NCBI GenBank assembly: GCA_965202585.1
Contig: OZ241826.1
Coordinates: 91,388,001 to 91,452,000 of the forward strand
Direction: 5' to 3'
Length of the DNA: 64,000 bases
Source: Thalia democratica
Taxonomy: Eukaryota
Both the position numbers and the translations under genes were made by a program. The notes under the pieces were generated by a model. That model had not been told where the DNA came from. It searched no databases and was given only the letters and a program-made list of their open reading frames with translations. Positions 34,479 through 57,160 of this stretch are shown here, one piece after another; position 1 is the stretch's first letter, and each line of letters begins with the position of its first letter.

Positions 34479-35107
34479 CTGCGGCTTGATTTTGCGTTTA
34501 CCAAAATCATTAAAAAATTGTGTCCGCAAATTTGCATAATTCTCTTCTTTTCGAATAATTTCGCTCTCTCCTTCTTAATTTTGCACACAAATTCACACCT
34601 CCAACCGAACTGACGCGTATATATACGAGCTTCGGCATGGACGCTTTGATAAGAAAACAAGAGGCGTTCAGCATTATCAATAAAAACACGGCCTCCCAAC
34701 AGTGACGAAACGCATTGATTCTCATGTGTCTAAATATATTTGTATACAAAGGTAAAATCAACAGACAATAGCGACTTAGCGACTTAGCGACTTGGCGTGC
34801 TTGGCCATAATAGCACATTAGATGTCTTATTGTAAGCTTATTTTTAAATTAGAACTGATAAAATTTAAACACTGTGAGTTTATTGAAAATAAATACGACT
34901 TACGCGCAAAATAAAAAAACAGAAACAGTTGTACAAATTTAGAAACATTCATTTTACTAAAGTTTAAACTAAAGTTTTAAAAATGTTGTTGAAAACAAAA
35001 AAATATAAAATACGCAATCGTTTTGTGCAAATAAATGCCAGTTTATAGTATGATGATATAGTTGCCAGTTGTTTATTGAGAATAAAAGAAAATTGGGCTT
35101 CATGCAA

Positions 35108-35689
35108 TTAGTTTAGTTGAAATATCAAGAGTTTATGAAGTAAAATAACGATACGAGTTGCATGGAAGCTGAAAAAACAAAAAATACTGATTAAATTTAG
35201 AAAAATTCTCTTTCTTTTCGTTTTGGTGTCGAACTGAATTTTCAGCATCTTCATGATCAGGTTCCTGTTGCTCATCTTCTTCAGGTTTTTGCTCAGCTTC
35301 TTGTAAAACGTCAGCTCGCCGTTCCGAGACTCGTAGTAGCGGTTGAGCAGGGCGAGAACGGACAGGCCGAGCATGCACACGGTGAACACCACGCACACGA
35401 TCATGCACGCGACGAAGAACACTTCGAAGTCTAAAAAGTCCGTTATCTTCGTCGCCTCCCTACTTTCAGTCATGACCATGTGTCTCAGCTGGTCGTCGAG
35501 CTTTTTCTTCGTGTGCTCGTCCTGGAGAGATATGTCGAAAAGTGTCGACCTCATCATTTGTTTCAGCTGCGCCACTCCGCTGTAGTCCAAAGATGGCATG
35601 GAGGCGAGCAAGTGGGCGTAAAGGTTCTTGAAGGTCATCGCGGCCGTGCTGTCTTGCTTCATGTCCTTTTCCGGCGCCTTCGGCAGCAT
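35108..35689 (-). CDS. Copy 30 (A3), 193 aa read-through, ITDFLD
   Basis: Donor SNP present, D>Y absent. Confidence 0.65.
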   Translation of the reverse strand: MLPKAPEKDMKQDSTAAMTFKNLYAHLLASMPSLDYSGVAQLKQMMRSTLFDISLQDEHTKKKLDDQLRHMVMTESREATKITDFLDFEVFFVACMIVCVVFTVCMLGLSVLALLNRYYESRNGELTFYKKLSKNLKKMSNRNLIMKMLKIQFDTKTKRKRIFLNLISIFCFFSFHATRIVILLHKLLIFQLN

Positions 35690-36318
35690 CTGCGGCTTGA
35701 TTTTGCGTTTACCAAAATCATTAAAAAATTGTGTCCGCAAATTTGCATAATTCTCTTCTTTTCGAATAATTTCGCTCTCTCCTTCTTAATTTTGCACACA
35801 AATTCACACCTCCAACCGAACTGACGCGTATATATACGAGCTCCGGCATAGACACTTTGATAAGAAGAGAAGAGGCGTTCAGCATTATCAATAAAAACAC
35901 GGCCTCCCAACAGTGACGAAACGCATTGATTCTCATGTGTCTAAATATATTTGTATACAAAGGTAAAATCAACAGACAATAGCGACTTAGCGACTTAGCG
36001 ACTTGGCGTGCTTGGCCATAATAGCACATTAGATGTCTTATTGTAAGCTTATTTTTAAATTAGAACTGATAAAATTTAAACACTGTGAGTTTATTGAAAA
36101 TAAATACGACTTACGCGCAAAATAAAAAAACAGAAACAGTTGTACAAATTTAGAAACATTCATTTTACTAAAGTTTAAACTAAAGTTTTAAAAATGTTGT
36201 TGAAAACAAAAAAATATAAAATACGCAATCGTTTTGTGCAAATAAATGCCAGTTTATAGTATGATGATATAGTTGCCAGTTGTTTATTGAGAATAAAAGA
36301 AAATTGGGCTTCATGCAA

Positions 36319-36900
36319 TTAGTTTAGTTGAAATATCAAGAGTTTATGAAGTAAAATAACGATACGAGTTGCATGGAAGCTGAAAAAACAAAAAATACTG
36401 ATTAAATTTAGAAAAATTCTCTTTCTTTTCGTTTTGGTGTCGAACTGAATTTTCAGCATCTTCATGATCAGGTTCCTGTTGCTCATCTTCTTCAGGTTCT
36501 TGCTCAGCTTCTTGTAAAACGTCAGCTCGCCGTTCCGAGACTCGTAGTAGCGGTTGAGCAGGGCGAGAACGGACAGGCCGAGCATGCACACGGTGAACAC
36601 CACGCACACGATCATGCACGCGACGAAGAACACTTCGAAGTCCAAAAAGTACGTTATCTTCGTCGCCTCCCTACTTTCAGTCATGACCATGTGTCTCAGC
36701 TGGTCGTCGAGCTTTTTCTTCGTGTGCTCGTCCTGGAGAGATATGTCGAAAAGTGTCGACCTCATCATTTGTTTCAGCTGCGCCACTCCGCAGTAGTCCA
36801 AAGATGGCATGGAGGCGAGCAAGTGGGCGTAAAGGTTCTTGAAGGTCATCGCGGCCGTGCTGTCTTGCTTCATGTCCTTTTCCGGCGCCTTCGGCAGCAT
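36319..36900 (-). CDS. Copy 31 (A3), 193 aa read-through, private S>C
   Basis: LDYCGV in translation. Confidence 0.65.
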   Translation of the reverse strand: MLPKAPEKDMKQDSTAAMTFKNLYAHLLASMPSLDYCGVAQLKQMMRSTLFDISLQDEHTKKKLDDQLRHMVMTESREATKITYFLDFEVFFVACMIVCVVFTVCMLGLSVLALLNRYYESRNGELTFYKKLSKNLKKMSNRNLIMKMLKIQFDTKTKRKRIFLNLISIFCFFSFHATRIVILLHKLLIFQLN

Positions 36901-37529
36901 CTGCGGCTTGATTTTGCGTTTACCAAAATCATTAAAAAATTGTGTCCGCAAATTTGCATAATTCTCTTCTTTTCGAATAATTTCGCTCTCTCCTTCTTAA
37001 TTTTGCACACAAATTCACACCTCCAACCGAACTGACGCGTATATATACGAGCTCCGGCATAGACACTTTGATAAGAAGAGAAGAGGCGTTCAGCATTATC
37101 AATAAAAACACGGCCTCCCAACAGTGACGAAACGCATTGATTCTCATGTGTCTAAATATATTTGTATACAAAGGTAAAATCAACAGACAATAGCGACTTA
37201 GCGACTTAGCGACTTGGCGTGCTTGGCCATAATAGCACATTAGATGTCTTATTGTAAGCTTATTTTTAAATTAGAACTGATAAAATTTAAACACTGTGAG
37301 TTTATTGAAAATAAATACGACTTACGCGCAAAATAAAAAAACAGAAACAGTTGTACAAATTTAGAAACATTCATTTTACTAAAGTTTAAACTAAAGTTTT
37401 AAAAATGTTGTTGAAAACAAAAAAATATAAAATACGCAATCGTTTTGTGCAAATAAATGCCAGTTTATAGTATGATGATATAGTTGCCAGTTGTTTATTG
37501 AGAATAAAAGAAAATTGGGCTTCATGCAA

Positions 37530-38111
37530 TTAGTTTAGTTGAAATATCAAGAGTTTATGAAGTAAAATAACGATACGAGTTGCATGGAAGCTGAAAAAAC
37601 AAAAAATACTGATTAAATTTAGAAAAATTCTCTTTCTTTTCGTTTTGGTGTCGAACTGAATTTTCAGCATCTTCATGATCAGGTTCCTGTTGCTCATCTT
37701 CTTCAGGTTCTTGCTCAGCTTCTTGTAAAACGTCAGCTCGCCGTTCCGAGACTCGTAGTAGCGGTTGAGCAGGGCGAGAACGGACAGGCCGAGCATGCAC
37801 ACGGTGAACACCACGCACACGATCATGCACGCGACGAAGAACACTTCGAAGTCCAAAAAGTACGTTATCTTCGTCGCCTCCCTACTTTCAGTCATGACCA
37901 TGTGTCTCAGCTGGTCGTCGAGCTTTTTCTTCGTGTGCTCGTCCTGGAGAGATATGTCGAAAAGTGTCGACCTCATCATTTGTTTCAGCTGCGCCACTCC
38001 GCTGTAGTCCAAAGATGGCATGGAGGCGAGCAAGTGGGCGTAAAGGTTCTTGAAGGTCATCGCGGCCGTGCTGTCTTGCTTCATGTCCTTTTCCGGCGCC
38101 TTCGGCAGCAT
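37530..38111 (-). CDS. Copy 32 (A3), 193 aa read-through
   Basis: As copy 28. Confidence 0.65.
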   Translation of the reverse strand: MLPKAPEKDMKQDSTAAMTFKNLYAHLLASMPSLDYSGVAQLKQMMRSTLFDISLQDEHTKKKLDDQLRHMVMTESREATKITYFLDFEVFFVACMIVCVVFTVCMLGLSVLALLNRYYESRNGELTFYKKLSKNLKKMSNRNLIMKMLKIQFDTKTKRKRIFLNLISIFCFFSFHATRIVILLHKLLIFQLN

Positions 38112-38740
38112 CTGCGGCTTGATTTTGCGTTTACCAAAATCATTAAAAAATTGTGTCCGCAAATTTGCATAATTCTCTTCTTTTCGAATAATTTCGCTCT
38201 CTCCTTCTTAATTTTGCACACAAATTCACACCTCCAACCGAACTGACGCGTATATATACGAGCTCCGGCATAGACACTTTGATAAGAAGAGAAGAGGCGT
38301 TCAGCATTATCAATAAAAACACGGCCTCCCAACAGTGACGAAACGCATTGATTCTCATGTGTCTAAATATATTTGTATACAAAGGTAAAATCAACAGACA
38401 ATAGCGACTTAGCGACTTAGCGACTTGGCGTGCTTGGCCATAATAGCACATTAGATGTCTTATTGTAAGCTTATTTTTAAATTAGAACTGATAAAATTTA
38501 AACACTGTGAGTTTATTGAAAATAAATACGACTTACGCGCAAAATAAAAAAACAGAAACAGTTGTACAAATTTAGAAACATTCATTTTACTAAAGTTTAA
38601 ACTAAAGTTTTAAAAATGTTGTTGAAAACAAAAAAATATAAAATACGCAATCGTTTTGTGCAAATAAATGCCAGTTTATAGTATGATGATATAGTTGCCA
38701 GTTGTTTATTGAGAATAAAAGAAAATTGGGCTTCATGCAA

Positions 38741-39322
38741 TTAGTTTAGTTGAAATATCAAGAGTTTATGAAGTAAAATAACGATACGAGTTGCATGGAA
38801 GCTGAAAAAACAAAAAATACTGATTAAATTTAGAAAAATTCTCTTTCTTTTCGTTTTGGTGTCGAACTGAATTTTCAGCATCTTCATGATCAGGTTCCTG
38901 TTGCTCATCTTCTTCAGGTTCTTGCTCAGCTTCTTGTAAAACGTCAGCTCGCCGTTCCGAGACTCGTAGTAGCGGTTGAGCAGGGCGAGAACGGACAGGC
39001 CGAGCATGCACACGGTGAACACCACGCACACGATCATGCACGCGACGAAGAACACTTCGAAGTCCAAAAAGTACGTTATCTTCGTCGCCTCCCTACTTTC
39101 AGTCATGACCATGTGTCTCAGCTGGTCGTCGAGCTTTTTCTTCGTGTGCTCGTCCTGGAGAGATATGTCGAAAAGTGTCGACCTCATCATTTGTTTCAGC
39201 TGCGCCACTCCGCTGTAGTCCAAAGATGGCATGGAGGCGAGCAAGTGGGCGTAAAGGTTCTTGAAGGTCATCGCGGCCGTGCTGTCTTGCTTCATGTCCT
39301 TTTCCGGCGCCTTCGGCAGCAT
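38741..39322 (-). CDS. Copy 33 (A3), 193 aa read-through
   Basis: As copy 28. Confidence 0.65.
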   Translation of the reverse strand: MLPKAPEKDMKQDSTAAMTFKNLYAHLLASMPSLDYSGVAQLKQMMRSTLFDISLQDEHTKKKLDDQLRHMVMTESREATKITYFLDFEVFFVACMIVCVVFTVCMLGLSVLALLNRYYESRNGELTFYKKLSKNLKKMSNRNLIMKMLKIQFDTKTKRKRIFLNLISIFCFFSFHATRIVILLHKLLIFQLN

Positions 39323-39951
39323 CTGCGGCTTGATTTTGCGTTTACCAAAATCATTAAAAAATTGTGTCCGCAAATTTGCATAATTCTCTTCTTTTCGAAT
39401 AATTTCGCTCTCTCCTTCTTAATTTTGCACACAAATTCACACCTCCAACCGAACTGACGCGTATATATACGAGCTCCGGCATAGACACTTTGATAAGAAG
39501 AGAAGAGGCGTTCAGCATTATCAATAAAAACACGGCCTCCCAACAGTGACGAAACGCATTGATTCTCATGTGTCTAAATATATTTGTATACAAAGGTAAA
39601 ATCAACAGACAATAGCGACTTAGCGACTTAGCGACTTGGCGTGCTTGGCCATAATAGCACATTAGATGTCTTATTGTAAGCTTATTTTTAAATTAGAACT
39701 GATAAAATTTAAACACTGTGAGTTTATTGAAAATAAATACGACTTACGCGCAAAATAAAAAAACAGAAACAGTTGTACAAATTTAGAAACATTCATTTTA
39801 CTAAAGTTTAAACTAAAGTTTTAAAAATGTTGTTGAAAACAAAAAAATATAAAATACGCAATCGTTTTGTGCAAATAAATGCCAGTTTATAGTATGATGA
39901 TATAGTTGCCAGTTGTTTATTGAGAATAAAAGAAAATTGGGCTTCATGCAA

Positions 39952-40533
39952 TTAGTTTAGTTGAAATATCAAGAGTTTATGAAGTAAAATAACGATACGA
40001 GTTGCATGGAAGCTGAAAAAACAAAAAATACTGATTAAATTTAGAAAAATTCTCTTTCTTTTCGTTTTGGTGTCGAACTGAATTTTCAGCATCTTCATGA
40101 TCAGGTTCCTGTTGCTCATCTTCTTCAGGTTCTTGCTCAGCTTCTTGTAAAACGTCAGCTCGCCGTTCCGAGACTCGTAGTAGCGGTTGAGCAGGGCGAG
40201 AACGGACAGGCCGAGCATGCACACGGTGAACACCACGCACACGATCATGCACGCGACGAAGAACACTTCGAAGTCCAAAAAGTACGTTATCTTCGTCGCC
40301 TCCCTACTTTCAGTCATGACCATGTGTCTCAGCTGGTCGTCGAGCTTTTTCTTCGTGTGCTCGTCCTGGAGAGATATGTCGAAAAGTGTCGACCTCATCA
40401 TTTGTTTCAGCTGCGCCACTCCGCTGTAGTCCAAAGATGGCATGGAGGCGAGCAAGTGGGCGTAAAGGTTCTTGAAGGTCATCGCGGCCGTGCTGTCTTG
40501 CTTCATGTCCTTTTCCGGCGCCTTCGGCAGCAT
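39952..40533 (-). CDS. Copy 34 (A3), 193 aa read-through
   Basis: As copy 28. Confidence 0.65.
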   Translation of the reverse strand: MLPKAPEKDMKQDSTAAMTFKNLYAHLLASMPSLDYSGVAQLKQMMRSTLFDISLQDEHTKKKLDDQLRHMVMTESREATKITYFLDFEVFFVACMIVCVVFTVCMLGLSVLALLNRYYESRNGELTFYKKLSKNLKKMSNRNLIMKMLKIQFDTKTKRKRIFLNLISIFCFFSFHATRIVILLHKLLIFQLN

Positions 40534-41162
40534 CTGCGGCTTGATTTTGCGTTTACCAAAATCATTAAAAAATTGTGTCCGCAAATTTGCATAATTCTCT
40601 TCTTTTCGAATAATTTCGCTCTCTCCTTCTTAATTTTGCACACAAATTCACACCTCCAACCGAACTGACGCGTATATATACGAGCTCCGGCATAGACACT
40701 TTGATAAGAAGAGAAGAGGCGTTCAGCATTATCAATAAAAACACGGCCTCCCAACAGTGACGAAACGCATTGATTCTCATGTGTCTAAATATATTTGTAT
40801 ACAAAGGTAAAATCAACAGACAATAGCGACTTAGCGACTTAGCGACTTGGCGTGCTTGGCCATAATAGCACATTAGATGTCTTATTGTAAGCTTATTTTT
40901 AAATTAGAACTGATAAAATTTAAACACTGTGAGTTTATTGAAAATAAATACGACTTACGCGCAAAATAAAAAAACAGAAACAGTTGTACAAATTTAGAAA
41001 CATTCATTTTACTAAAGTTTAAACTAAAGTTTTAAAAATGTTGTTGAAAACAAAAAAATATAAAATACGCAATCGTTTTGTGCAAATAAATGCCAGTTTA
41101 TAGTATGATGATATAGTTGCCAGTTGTTTATTGAGAATAAAAGAAAATTGGGCTTCATGCAA

Positions 41163-41744
41163 TTAGTTTAGTTGAAATATCAAGAGTTTATGAAGTAAAA
41201 TAACGATACGAGTTGCATGGAAGCTGAAAAAACAAAAAATACTGATTAAATTTAGAAAAATTCTCTTTCTTTTCGTTTTGGTGTCGAACTGAATTTTCAG
41301 CATCTTCATGATCAGGTTCCTGTTGCTCATCTTCTTCAGGTTCTTGCTCAGCTTCTTGTAAAACGTCAGCTCGCCGTTCCGAGACTCGTAGTAGCGGTTG
41401 AGCAGGGCGAGAACGGACAGGCCGAGCATGCACACGGTGAACACCACGCACACGATCATGCACGCGACGAAGAACACTTCGAAGTCCAAAAAGTACGTTA
41501 TCTTCGTCGCCTCCCTACTTTCAGTCATGACCATGTGTCTCAGCTGGTCGTCGAGCTTTTTCTTCGTGTGCTCGTCCTGGAGAGATATGTCGAAAAGTGT
41601 CGACCTCATCATTTGTTTCAGCTGCGCCACTCCGCTGTAGTCCAAAGATGGCATGGAGGCGAGCAAGTGGGCGTAAAGGTTCTTGAAGGTCATCGCGGCC
41701 GTGCTGTCTTGCTTCATGTCCTTTTCCGGCGCCTTCGGCAGCAT
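41163..41744 (-). CDS. Copy 35 (A3), 193 aa read-through
   Basis: As copy 28. Confidence 0.65.
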   Translation of the reverse strand: MLPKAPEKDMKQDSTAAMTFKNLYAHLLASMPSLDYSGVAQLKQMMRSTLFDISLQDEHTKKKLDDQLRHMVMTESREATKITYFLDFEVFFVACMIVCVVFTVCMLGLSVLALLNRYYESRNGELTFYKKLSKNLKKMSNRNLIMKMLKIQFDTKTKRKRIFLNLISIFCFFSFHATRIVILLHKLLIFQLN

Positions 41745-42365
41745 CTGCGGCTTGATTTTGCGTTTACCAAAATCATTAAAAAATTGTGTCCGCAAATTTG
41801 CATAATTCTCTTCTTTTCGAATAATTTCGCTCTCTCCTTCTTAATTTTGCACACAAATTCACACCTCCAACCGAACTGACGCGTATATATACGAGCTCCG
41901 GCATAGACACTTTGATAAGAAGAGAAGAGGCGTTCAGCATTATCAATAAAAACACGGCCTCCCAACAGTGACGAAACGCATTGATTCTCATGTGTCTAAA
42001 TATATTTGTATACAAAGGTAAAATCAACAGACAATAGCGACTTAGCGACTTGGCGTGCTTGGCCATAATAGCACATTAGATGTCTTATTGTAAGCTTATT
42101 TTTAAATTAGAACTGATAAAATTTAAACACTGTGAGTTTATTGAAAATAAATACGACTTACGCGCAAAATAAAAAAACAGAAACAGTTGTACAAATTTAG
42201 AAACATTCATTTTACTAAAGTTTAAACTAAAGTTTTAAAAATGTTGTTGAAAACAAAAAAATATAAAATACGCAATCGTTTTGTGCAAATAAATGCCAGT
42301 TTATAGTATGATGATATAGTTGCCAGTTGTTTATTGAGAATAAAAGAAAATTGGGCTTCATGCAA

Positions 42366-42947
42366 TTAGTTTAGTTGAAATATCAAGAGTTTATGAAGTA
42401 AAATAACGATACGAGTTGCATGGAAGCTGAAAAAACAAAAAATACTGATTAAATTTAGAAAAATTCTCTTTCTTTTCGTTTTGGTGTCGAACTGAATTTT
42501 CAGCATCTTCATGATCAGGTTCCTGTTGCTCATCTTCTTCAGGTTCTTGCTCAGCTTCTTGTAAAACGTCAGCTCGCCGTTCCGAGACTCGTAGTAGCGG
42601 TTGAACAGGGCGAGAACGGACAGGCCGAGCATGCACACGGTGAACACCACGCACACGATCATGCACGCGACGAAGAACACTTCGAAGTCCAAAAAGTACG
42701 TTATCTTCGTCGCCTCCCTACTTTCAGTCATGACCATGTGTCTCAGCTGGTCGTCGAGCTTTTTCTTCGTGTGCTCGTCCTGGAGAGATATGTCGAAAAG
42801 TGTCGACCTCATCATTTGTTTCAGCTGCGCCACTCCGCTGTAGTCCAAAGATGGCATGGAGGCGAGCAAGTGGGCGTAAAGGTTCTTGAAGGTCATCGCG
42901 GCCGTGCTGTCTTGCTTCATGTCCTTTTCCGGCGCCTTCGGCAGCAT
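42366..42947 (-). CDS. Copy 36 (A3), 193 aa read-through, private L>F at end of TM
   Basis: LALFNR in translation. Confidence 0.65.
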   Translation of the reverse strand: MLPKAPEKDMKQDSTAAMTFKNLYAHLLASMPSLDYSGVAQLKQMMRSTLFDISLQDEHTKKKLDDQLRHMVMTESREATKITYFLDFEVFFVACMIVCVVFTVCMLGLSVLALFNRYYESRNGELTFYKKLSKNLKKMSNRNLIMKMLKIQFDTKTKRKRIFLNLISIFCFFSFHATRIVILLHKLLIFQLN

Positions 42948-43576
42948 CTGCGGCTTGATTTTGCGTTTACCAAAATCATTAAAAAATTGTGTCCGCAAAT
43001 TTGCATAATTCTCTTCTTTTCGAATAATTTCGCTCTCTCCTTCTTAATTTTGCACACAAATTCACACCTCCAACCGAACTGACGCGTATATATACGAGCT
43101 CCGGCATAGACACTTTGATAAGAAGAGAAGAGGCGTTCAGCATTATCAATAAAAACACGGCCTCCCAACAGTGACGAAACGCATTGATTCTCATGTGTCT
43201 AAATATATTTGTATACAAAGGTAAAATCAACAGACAATAGCGACTTAGCGACTTAGCGACTTGGCGTGCTTGGCCATAATAGCACATTAGATGTCTTATT
43301 GTAAGCTTATTTTTAAATTAGAACTGATAAAATTTAAACACTGTGAGTTTATTGAAAATAAATACGACTTACGCGCAAAATAAAAAAACAGAAACAGTTG
43401 TACAAATTTAGAAACATTCATTTTACTAAAGTTTAAACTAAAGTTTTAAAAATGTTGTTGAAAACAAAAAAATATAAAATACGCAATCGTTTTGTGCAAA
43501 TAAATGCCAGTTTATAGTATGATGATATAGTTGCCAGTTGTTTATTGAGAATAAAAGAAAATTGGGCTTCATGCAA

Positions 43577-44158
43577 TTAGTTTAGTTGAAATATCAAGAG
43601 TTTATGAAGTAAAATAACGATACGAGTTGCATGGAAGCTGAAAAAACAAAAAATACTGATTAAATTTAGAAAAATTCTCTTTCTTTTCGTTTTGGTGTCG
43701 AACTGAATTTTCAGCATCTTCATGATCAGGTTCCTGTTGCTCATCTTCTTCAGGTTCTTGCTCAGCTTCTTGTAAAACGTCAGCTCGCCGTTCCGAGACT
43801 CGTAGTAGCGGTTGAGCAGGGCGAGAACGGACAGGCCGAGCATGCACACGGTGAACACCACGCACACGATCATGCACGCGACGAAGAACACTTCGAAGTC
43901 CAAAAAGTACGTTATCTTCGTCGCCTCCCTACTTTCAGTCATGACCATGTGTCTCAGCTGGTCGTCGAGCTTTTTCTTCGTGTGCTCGTCCTGGAGAGAT
44001 ATGTCGAAAAGTGTCGACCTCATCATTTGTTTCAGCTGCGCCACTCCGCTGTAGTCCAAAGATGGCATGGAGGCGAGCAAGTGGGCGTAAAGGTTCTTGA
44101 AGGTCATCGCGGCCGTGCTGTCTTGCTTCATGTCCTTTTCCGGCGCCTTCGGCAGCAT
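43577..44158 (-). CDS. Copy 37 (A3), 193 aa read-through
   Basis: As copy 28. Confidence 0.65.
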   Translation of the reverse strand: MLPKAPEKDMKQDSTAAMTFKNLYAHLLASMPSLDYSGVAQLKQMMRSTLFDISLQDEHTKKKLDDQLRHMVMTESREATKITYFLDFEVFFVACMIVCVVFTVCMLGLSVLALLNRYYESRNGELTFYKKLSKNLKKMSNRNLIMKMLKIQFDTKTKRKRIFLNLISIFCFFSFHATRIVILLHKLLIFQLN

Positions 44159-44779
44159 CTGCGGCTTGATTTTGCGTTTACCAAAATCATTAAAAAATTG
44201 TGTCCGCAAATTTGCATAATTCTCTTCTTTTCGAATAATTTCGCTCTCTCCTTCTTAATTTTGCACACAAATTCACACCTCCAACCGAACTGACGCGTAT
44301 ATATACGAGCTCCGGCATAGACACTTTGATAAGAAGAGAAGAGGCGTTCAGCATTATCAATAAAAACACGGCCTCCCAACAGTGACGAAACGCATTGATT
44401 CTCATGTGTCTAAATATATTTGTATACAAAGGTAAAATCAACAGACAATAGCGACTTAGCGACTTGGCGTGCTTGGCCATAATAGCACATTAGATGTCTT
44501 ATTGTAAGCTTATTTTTAAATTAGAACTGATAAAATTTAAACACTGTGAGTTTATTGAAAATAAATACGACTTACGCGCAAAATAAAAAAACAGAAACAG
44601 TTGTACAAATTTAGAAACATTCATTTTACTAAAGTTTAAACTAAAGTTTTAAAAATGTTGTTGAAAACAAAAAAATATAAAATACGCAATCGTTTTGTGC
44701 AAATAAATGCCAGTTTATAGTATGATGATATAGTTGCCAGTTGTTTATTGAGAATAAAAGAAAATTGGGCTTCATGCAA

Positions 44780-45289
44780 TTAGTTTAGTTGAAATATCAA
44801 GAGTTTATGAAGTAAAATAACGATACGAGTTGCATGGAAGCTGAAAAAACAAAAAATACTGATTAAATTTAGAAAAATTCACTTTCTTTTCGTTTTGGTG
44901 TCGAACTGAATTTTCAGCATCTTCATGATCAGGTTCCTGTTGCTCATCTTCTTCAGGTTTTTGCTCAGCTTCTTGTAAAACGTCAGCTCGCCGTTCCGAG
45001 ACTCGTAGTAGCGGTTGAGCAGGGCGAGAACGGACAGGCCGAGCATGCACACGGTGAACACCACGCACACGATCATGCACGCGACGAAGAACACTTCGAA
45101 GTCTAAAAAGTCCGTTATCTTCGTCGCATCCCTACTTCCAGTCATGACCATGTGTCTCAGCTGGTCGTCGAGCTTTTTCTTCGTGTTCTCGTCCTGGAGA
45201 GATATGTCGAAAAGTGTCGACCTCATCATTTGTTTCAACTGCGCCACTCCGCTGCATCTGCGGCTTGATCTTGCGTTTACCAAAATCAT
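44780..45289 (-). CDS. Copy 38: chimeric gene (B-type 5' half, A2-type 3' half), 155 aa spliced model from MILVNARSS
   Basis: A-type SNPs at <=44960, B-type SNPs from about 45104-45128; 104-bp segment absent. Confidence 0.65.
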
Positions 45290-45967
45290 TAAAATTGTGT
45301 CTGAAAATTTGCATAAATCTCTTCTTTTCGAATAATTTCGCTCTCTCCTTCTTAATTTTTGCACACAAATTCACACCTCCAACCGAACTGACGCGTATAT
45401 ATACGAGCTTCGGCATGGACACTTTGATGAGAAAAAAAGAGGCGTTCAGCATTATCGGTAAAAACACGGCCTCCAAACAGTGACGAAACGCATTGATTAC
45501 TTATGTGTCTAAATATGTTTGTATACAAAGGTAAAATCAACAGACAATAGCGACTTAGCGACTTGGCGTACTTGGCCATACTAGCACATTAGATGTCTTA
45601 TTGTAAGCTTTTTAACTAAGAACAGATAAAATTTTAACGCTGTGAGTTTATTGAAAATAAATACAACTTACGCGCAAAATAAAAAAACAGAAACAGTTAT
45701 ACAAATTTAAAAACATTCACTTTATTTTATTTTTTCAAACTTTTAACTTAAAACTTTCAAGCAAAAAATTTAAACTTGTGATTTAGGTTTATTGTGTTTT
45801 GCTTTTATAAATAAGAATAAACAGTTAAATTGAAGTTTAAAATAATTTTTTTAATAAAAAAACTATAAAATACGCAAACGTTTTGTGCAAATAATTGCCA
45901 GTTTATAGTATGATGATATAGTTGCGAATTGTTTATTGAGAATAAAAGAAAATTGGGCTTCATGCAG

Positions 45968-46477
45968 TTAGTTTAGTTGAAACATTAAAAGTTTATGAAG
46001 TAAAATAACGATACGAGTTGCATGGAAGCTGAAAAAACAAAAAATACTGATTAGATTTAGAAACATTCACTTTCTTTTCGTTTTGGTGTCAAACTGAATT
46101 TTCAGCATCTTCATGATCAGGTTCCTGTTGCTCATCTTCTTCAGGTTCTTGCTCAGCTTCTTGTAAAACGTCAGCTCGCCGTTCCGAGACTCGTAGTAGC
46201 GGTTGAGCAGGGCGAGAACGGACAGGCCGAGCATGCACACGGTGAACACCACGCACACGATCATGCACACGACGAAGAACACTTCGAAGTCCAAAAAGTC
46301 CGTTATCTTCGTCGCCTCCCTACTTTCAGTCATGACCATGTGTCTCAGCTGGTCGTCGAGCTTTTTCTTCGTGTTCTCGTCCTGGAGAGATATGTCGAAA
46401 AGTGTCGACCTCATCATTTGTTTCAACTGCGCCACTCCGCTGCATCAGCGGCTTGATCTTGCGTTTACCAAAATCAT
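45968..46477 (-). pseudogene. Copy 39 (B) with nonsense codon 11 (AGA>TGA); only downstream Met starts remain
   Basis: TGA at 46447..46445 in the MILVNARSSR frame. Confidence 0.55.
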
Positions 46478-47155
46478 TACAATTGTGTCTGAAAATTTGC
46501 ATAAATCTCTTCTTTTCGAATAATTTCGCTCTCTCCTTCTTAATTTTTGCACACAAATTCACACCTCCAACCGAACTGACGCGTATATATACGAGCTTCG
46601 GCATGGACGCTTTGATAAGAAAACAAAAGGCGTTCAGCATTATCGGTAAAAACACGGCCTCCAAACAGTGACGAAACGCATTGATTACTTATGTGTCTAA
46701 ATATGTTTGTATACAAAGGTAAAATCAACAGACAATAGCGACTTAGCGACTTGGCGTACTTGGCCATACTAGCACATTAGATGTCTTATTGTAAGCTTTT
46801 TAACTAAGAACAGATAAAATTTTAACGCTGTGAGTTTATTGAAAATAAATACGACTTAAGCGCAAAATAAAAAAACAGAAACAGTTATACAAATTTAAAA
46901 ACATTCACTTTATTTTATTTTTTCAAACTTTTAACTTAAAACTTTCAAGCAAAAAATTTAAACTTGTGATTTAGGTTTATTGTGTTTTGCTTTTATAAAT
47001 AAGAATAAACAGTTAAATTGAAGTTTAAAATAATTTTTTTAATAAAAAAACTATAAAATACGCAAACGTTTTGTGCAAATAATTGCCAGTTTATAGTATG
47101 ATGATATAGTTGCGAATTGTTTATTGAGAATAAAAGAAAATTGGGCTTCATGCAG

Positions 47156-47665
47156 TTAGTTTAGTTGAAACATTAAAAGTTTATGAAGTAAAATAACGAT
47201 ACGAGTTGCATAGAAGCTGAAAAAACAAAAAATACTGATTAGATTTAGAAACATTCACTTTCTTTTCGTTTTGGTGTCAAACTGAATTTTCAGCATCTTC
47301 ATGATCAGGTTCCTGTTGCTCATCTTCTTCAGGTTCTTGCTCAGCTTCTTGTAAAACGTCAGCTCGCCGTTCCGAGACTCGTAGTAGCGGTTGAGCAGGG
47401 CGAGAACGGACAGGCCGAGCATGCACACGGTGAACACCACGCACACGATCATGCACACGACGAAGAACACTTCGAAGTCTAAAAAGTCCGTTATCTTCGT
47501 CGCATCCCTACTTCCAGTCATGACCATGTGTCTCAGCTGGTCGTCGAGCTTTTTCTTCGTGTTCTCGTCCTGGAGAGATATGTCGAAAAGTGTCGACCTC
47601 ATCATTTGTTTCAACTGCGCCACTCCGCTGCATCTGCGGCTTGATCTTGCGTTTACCAAAATCAT
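47156..47665 (-). CDS. Copy 40 (B), 155 aa spliced model
   Basis: ATG ATT TTG GTA in frame with the conserved core; intron intact. Confidence 0.65.
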
Positions 47666-48343
47666 TAAAATTGTGTCTGAAAATTTGCATAAATCTCTTC
47701 TTTTCGAATAATTTCGCTCTCTCCTTCTTAATTTTTGCACACAAATTCACACCTCCAACCGAACTGACGCGTATATATACGAGCTTCGGCATGGACGCTT
47801 TGATGAGAAAAAAAGAGGCGTTCAGCATTATCGGTAAAAACACGGCCTCCAAACAGTGACGAAACGCATTGATTACTTATGTGTCTAAATATGTTTGTAT
47901 ACAAAGGTAAAATCAACAGACAATAGCGACTTAGCGACTTGGCGTACTTGGCCATACTAGCACATTAGATGTCTTATTGTAAGCTTTTTAACTAAGAACA
48001 GATAAAATTTTAACGCTGTGAGTTTATTGAAAATAAATACGACTTACGCGCAAAATAAAAAAACAGAAACAGTTATACAAATTTAAAAACATTCACTTTA
48101 TTTTATTTTTTCAAACTTTTAACTTAAAACTTTCAAGCAAAAAATTTAAACTTGTGATTTAGGTTTATTGTGTTTTGCTTTTATAAATAAGAATAAACAG
48201 TTAAATTGAAGTTTAAAATAATTTTTTTAATAAAAAAACTATAAAATACGCAAACGTTTTGTGCAAATAATTGCCAGTTTATAGTATGATGATATAGTTG
48301 CGAATTGTTTATTGAGAATAAAAGAAAATTGGGCTTCATGCAG

Positions 48344-48853
48344 TTAGTTTAGTTGAAACATTAAAAGTTTATGAAGTAAAATAACGATACGAGTTGCATA
48401 GAAGCTGAAAAAACAAAAAATACTGATTAGATTTAGAAACATTCACTTTCTTTTCGTTTTGGTGTCAAACTGAATTTTCAGCATCTTCATGATCAGGTTC
48501 CTGTTGCTCATCTTCTTCAGGTTCTTGCTCAGCTTCTTGTAAAACGTCAGCTCGCCGTTCCGAGACTCGTAGTAGCGGTTGAGCAGGGCGAGAACGGACA
48601 GGCCGAGCATGCACACGGTGAACACCACGCACACGATCATGCACACGACGAAGAACACTTCGAAGTCTAAAAAGTCCGTTATCTTCGTCGCATCCCTACT
48701 TCCAGTCATGACCATGTGTCTCAGCTGGTCGTCGAGCTTTTTCTTCGTGTTCTCGTCCTGGAGAGATATGTCGAAAAGTGTCGACCTCATCATTTGTTTC
48801 AACTGCGCCACTCCGCTGCATCTGCGGCTTGATCTTGCGTTTACCAAAATCAT
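48344..48853 (-). CDS. Copy 41 (B), 155 aa spliced model
   Basis: As copy 40. Confidence 0.65.
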
Positions 48854-49531
48854 TAAAATTGTGTCTGAAAATTTGCATAAATCTCTTCTTTTCGAATAAT
48901 TTCGCTCTCTCCTTCTTAATTTTTGCACACAAATTCACACCTCCAACCGAACTGACGCGTATATATACGAGCTTCGGCATGGACGCTTTGATGAGAAAAA
49001 AAGAGGCGTTCAGCATTATCGGTAAAAACACGGCCTCCAAACAGTGACGAAACGCATTGATTACTTATGTGTCTAAATACGTTTGTATACAAAGGTAAAA
49101 TCAACAGACAATAGCGACTTAGCGACTTGGCGTACTTGGCCATACTAGCACATTAGATGTCTTATTGTAAGCTTTTTAACTAAGAACAGATAAAATTTTA
49201 ACGCTGTGAGTTTATTGAAAATAAATACGACTTACGCGCAAAATAAAAAAACAGAAACAGTTATACAAATTTAAAAACATTCACTTTATTTTATTTTTTC
49301 AAACTTTTAACTTAAAACTTTCAAGCAAAAAATTTAAACTTGTGATTTAGGTTTATTGTGTTTTGCTTTTATAAATAAGAATAAACAGTTAAATTGAAGT
49401 TTAAAATAATTTTTTTAATAAAAAAACTATAAAATACGCAAACGTTTTGTGCAAATAATTGCCAGTTTATAGTATGATGATATAGTTGCGAATTGTTTAT
49501 TGAGAATAAAATAAAATTGGGCTTCATGCAA

Positions 49532-50041
49532 CTAGTTTAGTTGAAATATTAAGAGTTTATGAAGTAAAATAACGATACGAGTTGCATGGAAGCTGAAAAA
49601 ACAAAAAATACTGATTAAATTTAGAAACATTCACTTTCTTTTCGTTTTGGTGTCGAACTGAATTTTCAGCATCTTCATGATCAGGTTCCTGTTGCTCATC
49701 TTCTTCAGGTTCTTGCTCAGCTTCTTGTAAAACGTCAGCTCGCCGTTCCGAGACTCGTAGTAGCGGTTGAGCAGGGCGAGAACGGACAGGCCGAGCATGC
49801 ACACGGTGAACACCACGCACACGATCATGCACACGACGAAGAACACTTCGAAGTCTAAAAAGTCCGTTATCTTCGTCGCATCCCTACTTCCAGTCATGAC
49901 CATGTGTCTCAGCTGGTCGTCGAGCTTTTTCTTCGTGTTCTCGTCCTGGAGAGATATGTCGAAAAGTGTCGACCTCATCATTTGTTTCAACTGCGCCACT
50001 CCGCTGCATCTGCGGCTTGATCTTGCGTTTACCAAAATCAT
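49532..50041 (-). CDS. Copy 42 (B), 155 aa spliced model
   Basis: As copy 40, different terminal-exon haplotype. Confidence 0.65.
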
Positions 50042-50719
50042 TAAAATTGTGTCTGAAAATTTGCATAAATCTCTTCTTTTCGAATAATTTCGCTCTCTCC
50101 TTCTTAATTTTTGCACACAAATTCACACCTCCAACCGAACTGACGCGTATATATACGAGCTTCGGCATGGACGCTTTGATGAGAAAAAAAGAGGCGTTCA
50201 GCATTATCGGTAAAAACACGGCCTCCAAACAGTGACGAAACGCATTGATTACTTATGTGTCTAAATACGTTTGTATACAAAGGTAAAATCAACAGACAAT
50301 AGCGACTTAGCGACTTGGCGTACTTGGCCATACTAGCACATTAGATGTCTTATTGTAAGCTTTTTAACTAAGAACAGATAAAATTTTAACGCTGTGAGTT
50401 TATTGAAAATAAATACGACTTACGCGCAAAATAAAAAAACAGAAACAGTTATACAAATTTAAAAACATTCACTTTATTTTATTTTTTCAAACTTTTAACT
50501 TAAAACTTTCAAGCAAAAAATTTAAACTTGTGATTTAGGTTTATTGTGTTTTGCTTTTATAAATAAGAATAAACAGTTAAATTGAAGTTTAAAATAATTT
50601 TTTTAATAAAAAAACTATAAAATACGCAAACGTTTTGTGCAAATAATTGCCAGTTTATAGTATGATGATATAGTTGCGAATTGTTTATTGAGAATAAAAT
50701 AAAATTGGGCTTCATGCAA

Positions 50720-51229
50720 CTAGTTTAGTTGAAATATTAAGAGTTTATGAAGTAAAATAACGATACGAGTTGCATGGAAGCTGAAAAAACAAAAAATACT
50801 GATTAAATTTAGAAACATTCACTTTCTTTTCGTTTTGGTGTCGAACTGAATTTTCAGCATCTTCATGATCAGGTTCCTGTTGCTCATCTTCTTCAGGTTC
50901 TTGCTCAGCTTCTTGTAAAACGTCAGCTCGCCGTTCCGAGACTCGTAGTAGCGGTTGAGCAGGGCGAGAACGGACAGGCCGAGCATGCACACGGTGAACA
51001 CCACGCACACGATCATGCACACGACGAAGAACACTTCGAAGTCTAAAAAGTCCGTTATCTTCGTCGCATCCCTACTTCCAGTCATGACCATGTGTCTCAG
51101 CTGGTCGTCGAGCTTTTTCTTCGTGTTCTCGTCCTGGAGAGATATGTCGAAAAGTGTCGACCTCATCATTTGTTTCAACTGCGCCACTCCGCTGCATCTG
51201 CGGCTTGATCTTGCGTTTACCAAAATCAT
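50720..51229 (-). CDS. Copy 43 (B), 155 aa spliced model
   Basis: As copy 42. Confidence 0.65.
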
Positions 51230-51907
51230 TAAAATTGTGTCTGAAAATTTGCATAAATCTCTTCTTTTCGAATAATTTCGCTCTCTCCTTCTTAATTTTT
51301 GCACACAAATTCACACCTCCAACCGAACTGACGCGTATATATACGAGCTTCGGCATGGACGCTTTGATGAGAAAAAAAGAGGCGTTCAGCATTATCGGTA
51401 AAAACACGGCCTCCAAACAGTGACGAAACGCATTGATTACTTATGTGTCTAAATATGTTTGTATACAAAGGTAAAATCAACAGACAATAGCGACTTAGCG
51501 ACTTGGCGTACTTGGCCATACTAGCACATTAGATGTCTTATTGTAAGCTTTTTAACTAAGAACAGATAAAATTTTAACGCTGTGAGTTTATTGAAAATAA
51601 ATACGACTTACGCGCAAAATAAAAAAACAGAAACAGTTATACAAATTTAAAAACATTCACTTTATTTTATTTTTTCAAACTTTTAACTTAAAACTTTCAA
51701 GCAAAAAATTTAAACTTGTGATTTAGGTTTATTGTGTTTTGCTTTTATAAATAAGAATAAACAGTTAAATTGAAGTTTAAAATAATTTTTTTAATAAAAA
51801 AACTATAAAATACGCAAACGTTTTGTGCAAATAATTGCCAGTTTATAGTATGATGATATAGTTGCAAATTGTTTATTGAGAATAAAAGAAAATTGGGCTT
51901 CATGCAG

Positions 51908-52444
51908 TTAGTTTAGTTGAAACATTAAAAGTTTATGAAGTAAAATAACGATACGAGTTGCATGGAAGCTGAAAAAACAAAAAATACTGATTAAATTTAG
52001 AAACATTCACTTTCTTTTCGTTTTGGTGTCGAACTGAATTTTCAGCATCTTCATGATCAGGTTCCTGTTGCTCATCTTCTTCAGGTTCTTGCTCAGCTTC
52101 TTGTAAAACGTCAGCTCGCCGTTCCGAGACTCGTAGTAGCGGTTGAGCAGGGCGAGAACGGACAGGCCGAGCATGCACACGGTGAACACCACGCACACGA
52201 TCATGCACGCGACGAAGAACACTTCGAAGTCTAAAAAGTCCGTTATCTTCGTCGCGTCCCTACTTGCAGTCATGACCATGTGTCTCAGCTGGTTCTCGAG
52301 CTTTTTCTTCGTGTGCTCGTCCTGGAGAGATATGTCGAAAAGTGTCGACCTCATCATTTGTTTCAACTGCGCCACTCCGCTGCAACTTCGGCTTGATCTT
52401 GCGTTTACCAAAATCATTAAAAAATTGTTTCCGCAAATTTGCAT
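51908..52444 (-). CDS. Copy 44 (C): 164 aa from MQICGNNFL or 155 aa from MILV (52417); LENQ/TASRD variants
   Basis: Both upstream ATGs in frame. Confidence 0.63.
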
Positions 52445-53097
52445 AAATCTCTTCTTTTCGAATAATTTCGCTCTCTCCTTCTTAATTTTTGCACACAAAT
52501 TCACACCTCCAACCGAACTGACGCGTATATATACGAGCTTCGGCATGGACACTTTGATGAGAAAAAAAGAGGCGTTCAGCATTATCGGTAAAAACACGGC
52601 CTCCAAACAGTGACGAAACGCATTGATTACTTATGTGTCTAAATATGTTTGTATACAAAGGTAAAATCAACAGACAATAGCGACTTAGCGACTTGGCCAT
52701 ACTAGCACATTAGATGTCTTATTGTAAGTTTTTTTAACTAAGAACAGATAAAGTTTAAACACTGCGAGTTTATTGAAAATAAATACGACTTACATGCAAA
52801 ATAAAAAAACAAGAAACAGTTATACAAATTTAGAAACATTTACTTTTTTTTATTTTTTTCAAACTTTAAACTTGAAACTTTCAAGCAAAAAATTTAAACC
52901 TGTGATTTAGGTTTTTTATGTTTTGTATTTATAAATAACAACAAATTGTTAAACTGAAGTGTTAAAAAGGTTGTTAAAAATAATAAATTATAAAATACGC
53001 AAACGTTTTGAGCAATTAATTGCCAGTTTATAGTATGATGATAAAGTTGCCAGTTGTTTATTGAGAATAAAAGGTAATTGAGCTTCATGCAATTAGT

Positions 53098-53601
53098 TTA
53101 GTTAAATATTAAGAGTCTATGAAGTAAAATAACAAAAAGAGTTGCATGGAAGCTGAAAAAACAAAAAATACTGATTAAATTTAGAAACGTTCACTTTCTT
53201 TTCGTTTTGGTGTCGAACTGAATTTTCAGCATCTTCATGATCAGGTTCCTGTTGCTCATCTTCTTCAGGTTCTTGCTCAGCTTCTTGTAAAACGTCAGCT
53301 CGCCGTTCCGAGACTCGTAGTAGCGGTTGAGCAGGGCGAGAACGGACAGGCCGAGCATGCACACGGTGAACACCACGCACACGATCATGCACGCGACGAA
53401 GAACACTTCGAAGTCTAAAAAGTCCGTTATCTTCGTCGCGTCCCTACTTGCAGTCATGACCATGTGTCTCAGCTGGTCGTCGAGCTTTTTCTTCGTGTTC
53501 TCGTCCTGGAGAGATATGTCGAAAAGTGTCGACCTCATCATTTGTTTCAACTGCGCCACTCCGCTGCAACTTCGGCTTGATCTTGCGTTTACCAAAATCA
53601 T
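53098..53601 (-). CDS. Copy 45 (C), 153 aa spliced model (tail FHATLFVILLHRLLIFN)
   Basis: 1-nt deletion near end of terminal exon shortens tail by 2 aa. Confidence 0.63.
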
Positions 53602-54280
53602 TAAAAATTGTGTCTGAAAATTTGCATAAATCTCTTCTTTTCGAATAATTTCGCTCTCTCCTTCTTAATTTTTGCACACAAATTCACACCTCCAACCGAA
53701 CTGACGCGTATATATACGAGCTTCGGCATGGACACTTTGATGAGAAAAAAAGAGGCGTTTAGCATTATCGGTAAAAACACGGCCTCCAAACAGTGACGAA
53801 ACGCATTGATTACTTATGTGTCTAAATATGTTTGTATACAAAGGTAAAATCAACAGACAATAGCGACTTAGCGACTTGGCCATACTAGCACATTAGATGT
53901 CTTATTGTAAGTTTTTTAACTAAGAACAGATAAAATTTAAACACTGTGAGTTTATTGAAAAGAAAATACGACTTACATGCAAAATAAAAAAACAAGAAAC
54001 AGTTATACAAATTTAGAAACATTTACTTTTTTTTATTTTTTTCAAACTTTAAACTTGAAACTTTCAAGCAAAAAATTTAAACCTGTGATTTAGGTTTTTT
54101 GTGTTTTGTATTTATAAATAACAACAAATTGTTAAACTGAAGTATTAAAAAGGTTGTTAAAAATAATAAATTATAAAATACGCAAACGTTTTGAGCAATT
54201 AATTGCCAGTTTATAGTATGATGATAAAGTTGCCAGTTGTTTATTGAGAATAAAAGGTAATTGAGCTTCATGCAATTAGT

Positions 54281-54811
54281 TTAGTTAAATATTAAGAGTC
54301 TATGAAGTAAAATAACAAAAAGAGTTGCATGGAAGCTGAAAAAACAAAAAATACTGATTAAATTTAGAAACGTTCACTTTCTTTTCGTTTTGGTGTCGAA
54401 CTGAATTTTCAGCATCTTCATGATCAGGTTCCTGTTGCTCATCTTCTTCAGGTTCTTGCTCAGCTTCTTGTAAAACGTCAGCTCGCCGTTCCGAGACTCG
54501 TAGTAGCGGTTGAGCAGGGCGAGAACGGACAGGCCGAGCATGCACACGGTGAACACCACGCACACGATCATACACGCGACGAAGAACACTTCGAAGTCTA
54601 AAAAGTCCGTTATCTTCGTCGCCTCCCTGCTTTCAGTCATGACCATGTGTCTCAGCTGGTCGTCGAGCTTTTTCTTCGTGTTCTCGTCCTGGAGAGATAT
54701 GTCGAAAAGTGTCGACCTCATCATTTGTTTCAGCTGCGCCACTCCGCTGCAACTTCGGCTTGATATTGCGTTTACCAAAATCATTAAAAAATTGTTTCCG
54801 CAAATTTGCAT
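54281..54811 (-). CDS. Copy 46 (D): 162 aa from MQICG or 153 aa from MILV (54784)
   Basis: Most diverged upstream region; core frame intact. Confidence 0.63.
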
Positions 54812-55464
54812 AAATCTCTTCTTTTCGAATAACTTCGCTCTCTCCTTCTTAATTTTTGCACAAAAATTCACACCTCCAACCGAACTGACGCGTATATATA
54901 CGAGCTTCTGCATGGAGACCTTGATAAGAAAAGAAGAGGCGTTCAGCATTAGCGATAAATACACGGCCTCCAAACAGTGACGAAACGCATTGATTTCTTA
55001 TGTGATTAATATATTTATATACAAAGGTAAAATCAACAGACAATTGCGACTTAGCGACTTGGCGTACTTGGCCATAATAGCACATTAGATGTCTTATTGT
55101 AAGTTTTTTTAACTAAGAACAGATAAAATTTAAACACTGTGAGTTTATTGTAAAAAAAAAACGACTTACATGCAAGATTAAAAACAGAAACAATTATACA
55201 AATTAAGAAACATTCACTTTCTTTTATTTTTTAAAGTTTTTACTTGAAACTTTCAAGCAAAAAATTTAAACCTGTGATTTAGGTTTTTTGTGTTTTGCTT
55301 TTATAAATAACAATAAATTATCAAACTGAAGTATTAAAAAAGTTGTTAAAAATAAAAAAGTACAAAATACGCAAACGTTTTGTGCAAATAATTGCCAGTT
55401 TATAGTATGATGATATAGTTGCGAATTGTTTATTGAGAATAAAAGAAAATTGGGCTTCATGCAG

Positions 55465-55972
55465 TTAGTTTAGTTGAAATTTTAAGAGTTTATGAAGTAA
55501 AAGAACTATACGAGTTGCATGAAAGCTAAAAAAAAAACTTTTCAATCGAATTTAGAAACGTTCACTTTCTTTTCGTTTTGGTGTCGAACTGAATTTTCAG
55601 CATCTTCATGATCAGGTTCCTGTTGCTCATCTTCTTCAGGTTCTTGCTCAGCTTCTTGTAAAACGTCAGCTCGCCGTTCCGAGACTCGTAGTAGCGGTTG
55701 AGCAGGGCGAGAACGGACAGGCCGAGCATGCACACGGTGAACACCACGCACACGATCATGCACACGACGAAGAACACTTCGAAGTCTAAAAAGTCAGTTA
55801 TCTTCGTCGCGTCCCTGCTTCCAGTCATGACCATGTGTCTCAGCTGGTCGTCGAGCTTTTTCTTCGTGTTCTCGTCCTGGAGAGATATGTCGAAAAGTGT
55901 CGACCTCATCATTTGTTTCAACTGCGCCACTCCGCTGCATCTGCGGCTTGATCTTGCGTTTACCAAAATCAT
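55465..55972 (-). CDS. Copy 47 (B body, D-type 3' end), 155 aa spliced model, 40-nt intron 55526-55565
   Basis: GTGAAC...TTTTTAG intron; terminal exon differs by TTC>TTT, ATC>ATA, ATT>CTT. Confidence 0.65.
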
Positions 55973-56650: not shown

Positions 56651-57160
56651 TTAGTTTAGTTGAAACATTAAAAGTTTATGAAGTAAAATAACGATACGAG
56701 TTGCATAGAAGCTGAAAAAACAAAAAATACTGATTAGATTTAGAAACATTCACTTTCTTTTCGTTTTGGTGTCAAACTGAATTTTCAGCATCTTCATGAT
56801 CAGGTTCCTGTTGCTCATCTTCTTCAGGTTCTTGCTCAGCTTCTTGTAAAACGTCAGCTCGCCGTTCCGAGACTCGTAGTAGCGGTTGAGCAGGGCGAGA
56901 ACGGACAGGCCGAGCATGCACACGGTGAACACCACGCACACGATCATGCACACGACGAAGAACACTTCGAAGTCTAAAAAGTCCGTTATCTTCGTCGCAT
57001 CCCTACTTCCAGTCATGACCATGTGTCTCAGCTGGTCGTCGAGCTTTTTCTTCGTGTTCTCGTCCTGGAGAGATATGTCGAAAAGTGTCGACCTCATCAT
57101 TTGTTTCAACTGCGCCACTCCGCTGCATCTGCGGCTTGATCTTGCGTTTACCAAAATCAT
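56651..57160 (-). CDS. Copy 48 (B), 155 aa spliced model
   Basis: As copy 40. Confidence 0.65.

Follow-up and report, generated by a model that had tools for sequence, protein, structure and literature searches.

A gene present in more than fifty tandem copies, some of which lack the codons next to their start, raises the question of whether these shortened copies are still genes and, if so, where their translation begins and what becomes of the N-terminal end of their product. The stretch of DNA analysed here (the window, 64 kb) consists in its entirety of a single head-to-tail tandem array of such a gene, which is located on the minus strand.

Architecture of the array and the long-form gene

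A 28-nt anchor at the gene's 3′ end was counted 54 times in the window. Its spacing amounts to 1194–1211 bp over the first 37 units (373–44905) and to 1183–1188 bp over the following 16 units (44906–63895), which represent the long and the short form of the gene, respectively (Table 1). Each unit comprises a consensus TATA box, a leader of about 90–120 nt, one ORF and AATAAA signals 3′ of the stop codon. The ORF exhibits a strong bias towards G/C-ending codons, GC3 of the core reaching 80% in frame compared to 43% and 27% in the other two frames, and is embedded in spacer of 31% GC. Despite the 104 bp missing from the coding sequence of the short form, long and short units differ by only 15 bp in length because the latter contain about 94 bp of extra spacer (e.g. 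window 45700–45800), a segment which is present in all short units and in none of the long ones. The short block is built as a higher-order repeat of seven units and 8307 bp in the order B-C-D-C′-B-B-B (window 50846–63895), several units being identical across its two periods.

In the long-form product a variable N-terminal part is followed by a hydrophobic transmembrane (TM) segment at approximately residues 89–115 and by a basic tail of 45 residues. The tail (codons 116–160, window 349–483) is the most constrained stretch of the protein. It contains Y-K-K-L, ends on K-T-K-R-K and is identical in all long, short and third-lineage sequences (see below) with a complete 3′ end. An exception is the environmental long copy L013, which carries M146I, breaks off after residue 151 and at this point turns abruptly to unrelated sequence (L013:520–615); this break could mark the edge of an array or a rearrangement. 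With respect to the state of the ORF, 22 of the long units are intact and encode 160 residues, four carry an 8-bp frameshift deletion, and in the remaining eleven the stop codon TGA is changed to AGA.

In the long form two leader AUGs, designated ATG1 and uATG, precede the main start codon, which we refer to as the old ATG. Both share one frame and open an upstream ORF (uORF) of 29 codons (20 if counted from uATG) with its stop at 800–798, which overlaps the old ATG while being out of frame with the main ORF. In 37 of 37 long units the distance from uATG to the old ATG downstream of it is 32 nt, and uATG opens the 20-codon uORF which overlaps the main start. In every long unit the TGA of this uORF also overlaps the ATG of Met10 (ATGA; window 798–801 and equivalents). 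Such an overlap resembles a termination–reinitiation arrangement, and Met10 could be the real start of the long form.

Relatives of the gene were found as near-identical ORFs on short marine metagenome contigs, TARA Oceans included, and fall into three groups (Table 1). A 5.8-billion word search and HMMER over 1.84 billion representatives returned only such marine metagenome ORFs, whereas a scan of JGI metagenomes gave no match. An Rfam scan of 6 kb covering both unit types produced zero matches, searches with the family protein led to sub-threshold matches only in Pfam and to no match in the PDB, and exact-protein look-ups of the long and short products of the window found neither on record. 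The marine provenance of the relatives and a very short candidate intron suggest a planktonic tunicate with spliced-leader trans-splicing, probably an appendicularian, as the putative source. A literature search for a described array of such genes in appendicularian genomes was likewise negative. An AlphaFold2 model computed from an 11-sequence family alignment is helical only, with a pLDDT of 52, and too poor for a fold search. Judged by its sequence, the gene family is an undescribed orphan family of small, predicted single-pass membrane proteins.

Table 1. Location and make-up of the features discussed in the text (positions refer to the window; contig identifiers are given for environmental sequences)
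Feature	Position or contig	Strand	Remarks
Reference long-form CDS	346–828	−	160 aa and stop; old ATG 828–826, ORF end 346
Leader AUGs of the long form	858–887	−	ATG1 887–885; uATG (ATG ATT TTG) 860–858
Segment without counterpart in all short units	722–825	−	104 bp; long-form codons 2–36
Long-form block	373–44905	−	37 units of ~1194–1211 bp each (about 1203 bp)
Short-form block	44906–63895	−	16 units of 1183–1188 bp; 10 B, 4 C and 2 D
Short-form ORF of unit 44906, from uATG	44879–45289	−	136 aa and stop; uATG 45289–45287
Retained old ATG of unit 44906	45254–45257	−	ATG 45257–45255, now out of frame; deletion junction directly after it
Internal Met-Met	45224–45229	−	alternative start; would yield a 116-aa product shared by every unit
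TGA in the recruited frame of unit 46094	46445–46447	−	sole short copy with closed N-terminal extension
B-type leader	45301–45314	−	ATG1 45314–45312; TTTTCAG motif 45307–45301, then A
C-type 5′ end	52357–52444	−	ATG1 52444; uATG 52417, in frame; old ATG as TTG 52385–52383
D-type 5′ end	53541–53627	−	ATG1 53627; uATG 53601; old ATG as TTG 53569–53567
B type, 10 units			ATG1 out of frame, opens 60-codon overlapping ORF; old ATG kept
C type, 4 units			ATG1 in frame, 145-aa product; old ATG changed to TTG
D type, 2 units			ATG1 opens 8-codon uORF, its TAA overlapping uATG; old ATG changed to TTG
Environmental long forms	L001, L002, L012, L013
Environmental short forms	L004–L007		same deletion boundaries and TTG; four different samples
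Third lineage	L003, L008–L011		~70% identical; units ~750 bp, tandem

The 104-bp deletion and the recruited frame

The original prediction had claimed that families B, C and D lack the segment 722–825, and exactly these 104 bp are indeed missing in 16 of 16 short units, with a boundary which is ambiguous by one nucleotide (a shared C). In unit 44906 the old ATG is directly followed by the codons for SGVAQ, that is by the sequence found after 722 in the long unit. The frame opened by uATG reads MILVNARSSRRC-SGVAQLKQMMRSTLF and reaches the normal stop, resulting in a product of 136 residues. Since the length of the deletion (104 = 3×34+2) and the distance of uATG from the old ATG (32 = 3×10+2) both equal 2 mod 3, 12 former uORF codons are fused in frame to the core. 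The proposed exchange of frames, through which the upstream ATG ATT TTG comes into frame and the old ATG falls out of it, is thus confirmed, and the 136-aa ORF is open in 15 of the 16 short units. In the remaining one, unit 46094, a TGA in the recruited frame leaves only the 116-aa ORF starting from an internal Met-Met pair open. By chance, roughly one in three frameshifting deletions that start inside an overlapping uORF would restore the frame in this way.

The boundaries of the deletion are identical in all 16 short units (44906–62708) and in four environmental contigs (L004–L007), and this identity indicates, as far as can be read from the sequences, one single event. Since the same boundaries are encountered in the window and in four ocean samples, the short form is widespread in nature. 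A change of the old ATG to TTG, which corresponds to an Arg-to-Ser exchange in the new frame, is observed in units 52034, 53218, 54401, 60341, 61525 and 62708 as well as in L004–L007, so that the loss of this codon, predicted for the C and D copies, is met with in six units of the window. L004 contains an extra 4-nt deletion right after Met-Met which puts both candidate starts out of frame; some short copies therefore decay. An interpretation of the 104 bp as an intron lost from the short copies was rejected in view of boundaries reading CT...TA or TG...AC and of a GC3 of 85% in frame.

The third lineage starts at the same ATGATTTT. It is devoid of the 104-bp segment, of the old ATG and of Met-Met, contains no other in-frame ATG ahead of the TM segment, and its ORF is open in three different sequences. 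Its gap amounts to about 143 nt and spans the deletion junction. This gap may have arisen either by an independent deletion of the same phase class or by the 104-bp deletion combined with an in-frame loss of 39 nt. Promoter and TATA box of this lineage are conserved, the leader is a different one with small uORFs of its own, and an AG (TTTTAAG or TTTTTAG) is found at the leader position which in B units is occupied by TTTTCAG.

Start codons, conservation and the new N-terminal end

ATG1, which is located 25–27 nt upstream of uATG, had been absent from the original prediction and alters the picture family by family. Its phase differs among the sub-families because the T-run preceding uATG varies in length, which leads to the three leader types B, C and D (Table 1). 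The leader of L006 is like that of the C units, its first AUG being in frame, and L004 possesses the same leader in front of its broken ORF. In L005 and L007, whose leaders are like those of the D units, the first AUG opens just an 8-codon uORF ending on uATG. The out-of-frame old ATG is lost in all C, D and L004–L007 copies.

In B units the motif TTTTCAG is followed by A, and 11 nt separate its AG from uATG. Long units and C units have TTTGCGG instead, and the position varies among copies (GCGG, GCCG, GCAA, CAA). Trans-splicing in Oikopleura dioica takes place at unpaired AG acceptors, mostly with A as the next nucleotide, and the elimination of premature start codons has been put forward as a role for it (PMC6389100). 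Possibly, TTTTCAG|A of the B units is a putative trans-splice acceptor, the use of which would strip ATG1 from the B mRNAs; because the site is variable among copies we regard it as a lead only.

The search of sequencing runs yielded assembled contigs from four runs, among which the sole RNA library containing the family is a marine metatranscriptome with two small contigs. The first of them (230 nt) corresponds to a long-type copy, 43983 to 44204, and includes uATG together with 14 nt upstream of it. As it spans uATG, long-type RNA carries the start of the uORF.

Comparison of B and C short units reveals about 99% identity in promoter, leader and CDS, whereas their 3′ spacers differ by about 8% and, over one stretch of 100 alignment columns, by as much as 19%. 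This spacer divergence, which points to an old deletion, approximately equals that between long and short spacers. None of the 16 short units has a disrupted core ORF, and 12 sites vary among the 16 cores. Within the TM segment and the tail of the short units (66 codons), 0 nonsynonymous versus 3 synonymous sites vary, and in the N-terminal part 6 nonsynonymous versus 3 synonymous sites, the multi-allelic codons 75 and 78 included; both are small counts. Compared to the third lineage, the tail shows pN = 0 and pS = 0.20 and the TM segment pN = 0.11 and pS = 0.26–0.31, while within the third lineage pN of the N-terminal part is at least as high as pS. An extra synonymous constraint on the tail was ruled out, as its pS of 0.20 compares to 0.26–0.31 in the TM segment. 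The substitution pattern therefore distinguishes an invariant anchor and tail from a fast-evolving N-terminal part, and the short copies display the same pattern. Within the 12 new codons, in contrast, 1 synonymous, 2 nonsynonymous and 1 nonsense variable sites are observed, which amounts to no constraint. That long and short families share the membrane core, as had been claimed, is corroborated by the finding that fixed core differences between long and short units do not occur; given this, the constraint seen in the short copies could stem from gene conversion by the long ones. Taken at the level of sequence, the short genes are most likely still functional.

The first 27 residues of the short form carry a net charge of +5 and comprise four Arg and five Ser/Thr, with the first acidic residue at position 28 as opposed to position 7 in the long form. 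The description of this stretch as Arg/Ser-rich and free of Asp and Glu was hence correct. However, only 12 of the 27 residues are new, the other 15 being common to the long form, and the chance of finding no Asp or Glu in 12 new residues is roughly 0.2. The hydrophobic moment, used here as a crude test and not equivalent to a trained predictor, amounts to 0.57 in an 11-residue window compared to a shuffle mean of 0.57, and to 0.26 in an 18-residue window compared to a shuffle mean of 0.38. With +2 over its first 27 residues the C-type N-terminal end is less basic, and the corresponding end of the third lineage is neutral (net charge 0) and contains an acidic residue at position 14. Counted from the sequences, the net charge ahead of the TM segment is about −2 in the long and about +2 in the short form, and about +11 behind it. 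According to the positive-inside rule, this distribution predicts the same orientation, N-out/C-in, for both forms. A tail ending on KxKxx is typical of ER-retrieved or ER/Golgi membrane proteins. The end of the tail, K-T-K-R-K, presumably represents this KxKxx pattern next to a strongly positive cytosolic flank, which holds only with the annotated stop codon.

Competing explanations, known systems and significance

Start-codon use, like topology and function, we infer from the features described above. Translation of the short units most likely starts at a leader AUG, namely at ATG1 in C and at uATG in B and D, as these codons are reached first by scanning ribosomes. Against this speaks that the B units, which form the majority, keep the out-of-frame ATG1 with its 60-codon overlapping ORF as well as the old ATG. 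Some initiation at the internal Met-Met via leaky scanning is likely, and it is conceivable, though on balance rather unlikely, that the short copies are translated from Met-Met throughout, yielding a truncated protein of 116 residues, while the in-frame leader AUG is accidental and little used. This ORF is uninterrupted in all 16 short units, among them unit 46094, whose extension is closed. No leader AUG of the short units is provided with a purine at −3 (uATG has T), whereas the second Met of Met-Met has A. Furthermore, the exchange of the old ATG to TTG would also relieve an inhibitory overlapping uORF, and the lack of constraint on the 12 new codons fits this view equally well. Yet, the C units harbour two in-frame upstream AUGs, so that initiation there includes the extension, the leader AUGs come first for scanning ribosomes, and the third lineage must use the leader AUG because Met-Met and other in-frame starts are absent from it. 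This same lineage is what lends some weight to the reverse polarity, i.e. to a short ancestral form from which the long form would have arisen by a 104-bp insertion: the only diverged outgroup starts at the same AUG, does not contain the segment and agrees with the short units in some states of leader and promoter. The segment lost from the short form, however, has the gene's own codon bias, with a GC3 of 85% in the long frame compared to 47% and 38% in the other two frames, and among the environmental long copies its 36 codons show 1 nonsynonymous versus 3–4 synonymous changes. Inserted foreign or non-coding DNA would not look so, while codon bias and conservation mark the segment as old, constrained coding sequence and thus favour deletion over insertion. 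In addition, the gap of the outgroup is larger, spans the junction and may be a separate or secondary deletion. In line with the original prediction, which had argued from the G/C-ending bias, the segment is probably ancestral, and we consider the reverse polarity improbable.

If the short form has indeed arisen by deletion, it may still be asked whether its copies are anything more than non-functional array variants, spread by unequal crossing-over and with cores homogenised by gene conversion. The open upstream frame could be a one-in-three accident, other lesions are common in the array (the 8-bp frameshift in four copies, the loss of the stop codon in eleven, the TGA in unit 46094, the 4-nt deletion in L004), the lost segment specific to the long form was itself under constraint, and the cores of both forms are without fixed differences. 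On the other hand, the short form is represented by several sub-families which have diverged from one another and was recovered from four ocean samples independent of each other, its promoter, leader and CDS have stayed about 99% identical next to a spacer which diverged by about 8%, the TM segment and tail vary at synonymous sites only (0 versus 3), and the leader has been tidied up in the C and D units. We thus hold a pseudogene status of the short copies to be unlikely. Far less probable still appears the suggestion that the new end is a mitochondrial presequence or another change of targeting which sends both families to different compartments or, as pure speculation, sets them against each other as driver and decoy. 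What favours it is the composition of the end, whose first 27 residues have a charge of +5 and include no acidic one, compared to an acidic residue at position 7 of the long form, as well as the co-location of two families with a common core. Yet the hydrophobic moment does not exceed that of shuffled sequences, the long form possesses 15 of the 27 residues as well, the C-form end is less basic, the third-lineage end has no net charge and is acidic at position 14, the new codons are free of constraint, and the shared K-x-K-x-x tail with its positive cytosolic flank is, from general knowledge, ER/Golgi-like. The predicted presequence, having been deduced from composition alone, is consequently not upheld.

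The explanation which we prefer, and to which we give an even chance, is that an old, uORF-capturing deletion created a maintained family of short paralogues with a replaced N-terminal end. A 104-bp deletion of single origin would have removed codons 2–36 of the long form in a massively amplified orphan gene, thereby joining the first 12 codons of a once-overlapping uORF in frame to the conserved core. The resulting protein would retain the same TM segment and the invariant basic C-terminal tail, a shorter, basic N-terminal end taking the place of the conserved, mildly acidic one. The swap would thus affect the fast-evolving N-terminal part, which is predicted to be non-cytosolic, and spare anchor and tail. 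It may accordingly be regarded as diversification of paralogues at their variable end, with the compartment unchanged. A more far-reaching version, in which the leader AUG was captured twice (by the 104-bp deletion and by that of about 143 nt in the diverged lineage) and the array deliberately maintains two isoform families with invariant anchor and tail, different N-terminal ends and distinct topology, localisation or partners, strikes us as distinctly doubtful. If true, alternative-start isoforms would here have a genomic counterpart, tunable by copy number, in an ampliconic orphan gene.

The mechanism as such is an ordinary, known kind of evolutionary event, although the gene family is undescribed. 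As in other cases of uORF–CDS fusion and N-terminal replacement, an out-of-frame leader AUG with its overlapping uORF comes into frame through a deletion of a length indivisible by three, the core protein is left as it was, and some copies subsequently lose the old AUG. Unlike those cases, the present one resides in a tandem array of more than 50 copies in which the two forms are neighbours and trade sequence with each other, the same AUG is also the start in a second lineage, and its use in the short units is a prediction. With dual targeting via alternative N-termini it has in common a basic, acid-free extension encoded upstream of a shared core; it differs in that no amphipathic signal above composition is present, that the extension is not kept as such in the relative using the same AUG, and that the protein contains a TM segment and a lysine-rich tail of cytosolic type. 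Stellate/Su(Ste) of Drosophila, Slx/Sly of the mouse and Dox/Nmy likewise involve high-copy arrays of young, fast-evolving and lineage-restricted genes with co-located sub-families, whereas the forms considered here differ solely at the N-terminus. Single-pass ER/Golgi proteins with a di-lysine signal (KKxx or KxKxx) resemble the family in having one TM segment, a C-terminal flank of about +11 and an end, K-T-K-R-K, which in our case is invariant across lineages. In contrast to them, it exhibits no sequence or profile homology to a described family (Pfam, PDB, 1.8 billion representatives), and its motif would be lost if a candidate 42-nt intron were spliced.

As it stands the finding is mainly descriptive and of modest weight unless the two isoform families are functionally distinct. 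If the captured AUG is used, it would provide a clean natural case of a uORF being turned into coding sequence via one indel. As both states have survived next to each other, within one array as well as in wild populations, the system would then lend itself to work on how start codons evolve and on the diversification of ampliconic families. More than 50 copies with an invariant tail and a fast-evolving N-terminal end suggest that a key marine zooplankter either needs the product in unusually high dosage or has amplified the gene as a result of conflict.

Several further features of the array deserve mention. The eleven long units with TGA changed to AGA lie within window 30422–44905 (e.g. stop at about 30395–30397), and their ORFs extend by 33 codons through the candidate 42-nt intron to a hydrophobic tail ending on FQLN. 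The second metatranscriptome contig, which covers the 3′ end of the core (window 46066–46238), runs 5 nt past the candidate GT donor without diverging, which weakly suggests that splicing of the candidate intron had not taken place in this molecule. The 8-bp deletion in long units 14808, 19611, 20805 and 31625, located about 30 nt after the ATGs at 15255, 20058, 21252 and 32072, shifts the frame after residue 11, and only a 143-aa ORF from Met18 stays open in these units. Finally, just ahead of the TM segment (e.g. window 595–606) codons 75 (E/G/A/Q) and 78 (E/D/N) of the long form are multi-allelic and possibly represent a hot spot of diversifying selection within the N-terminal part.
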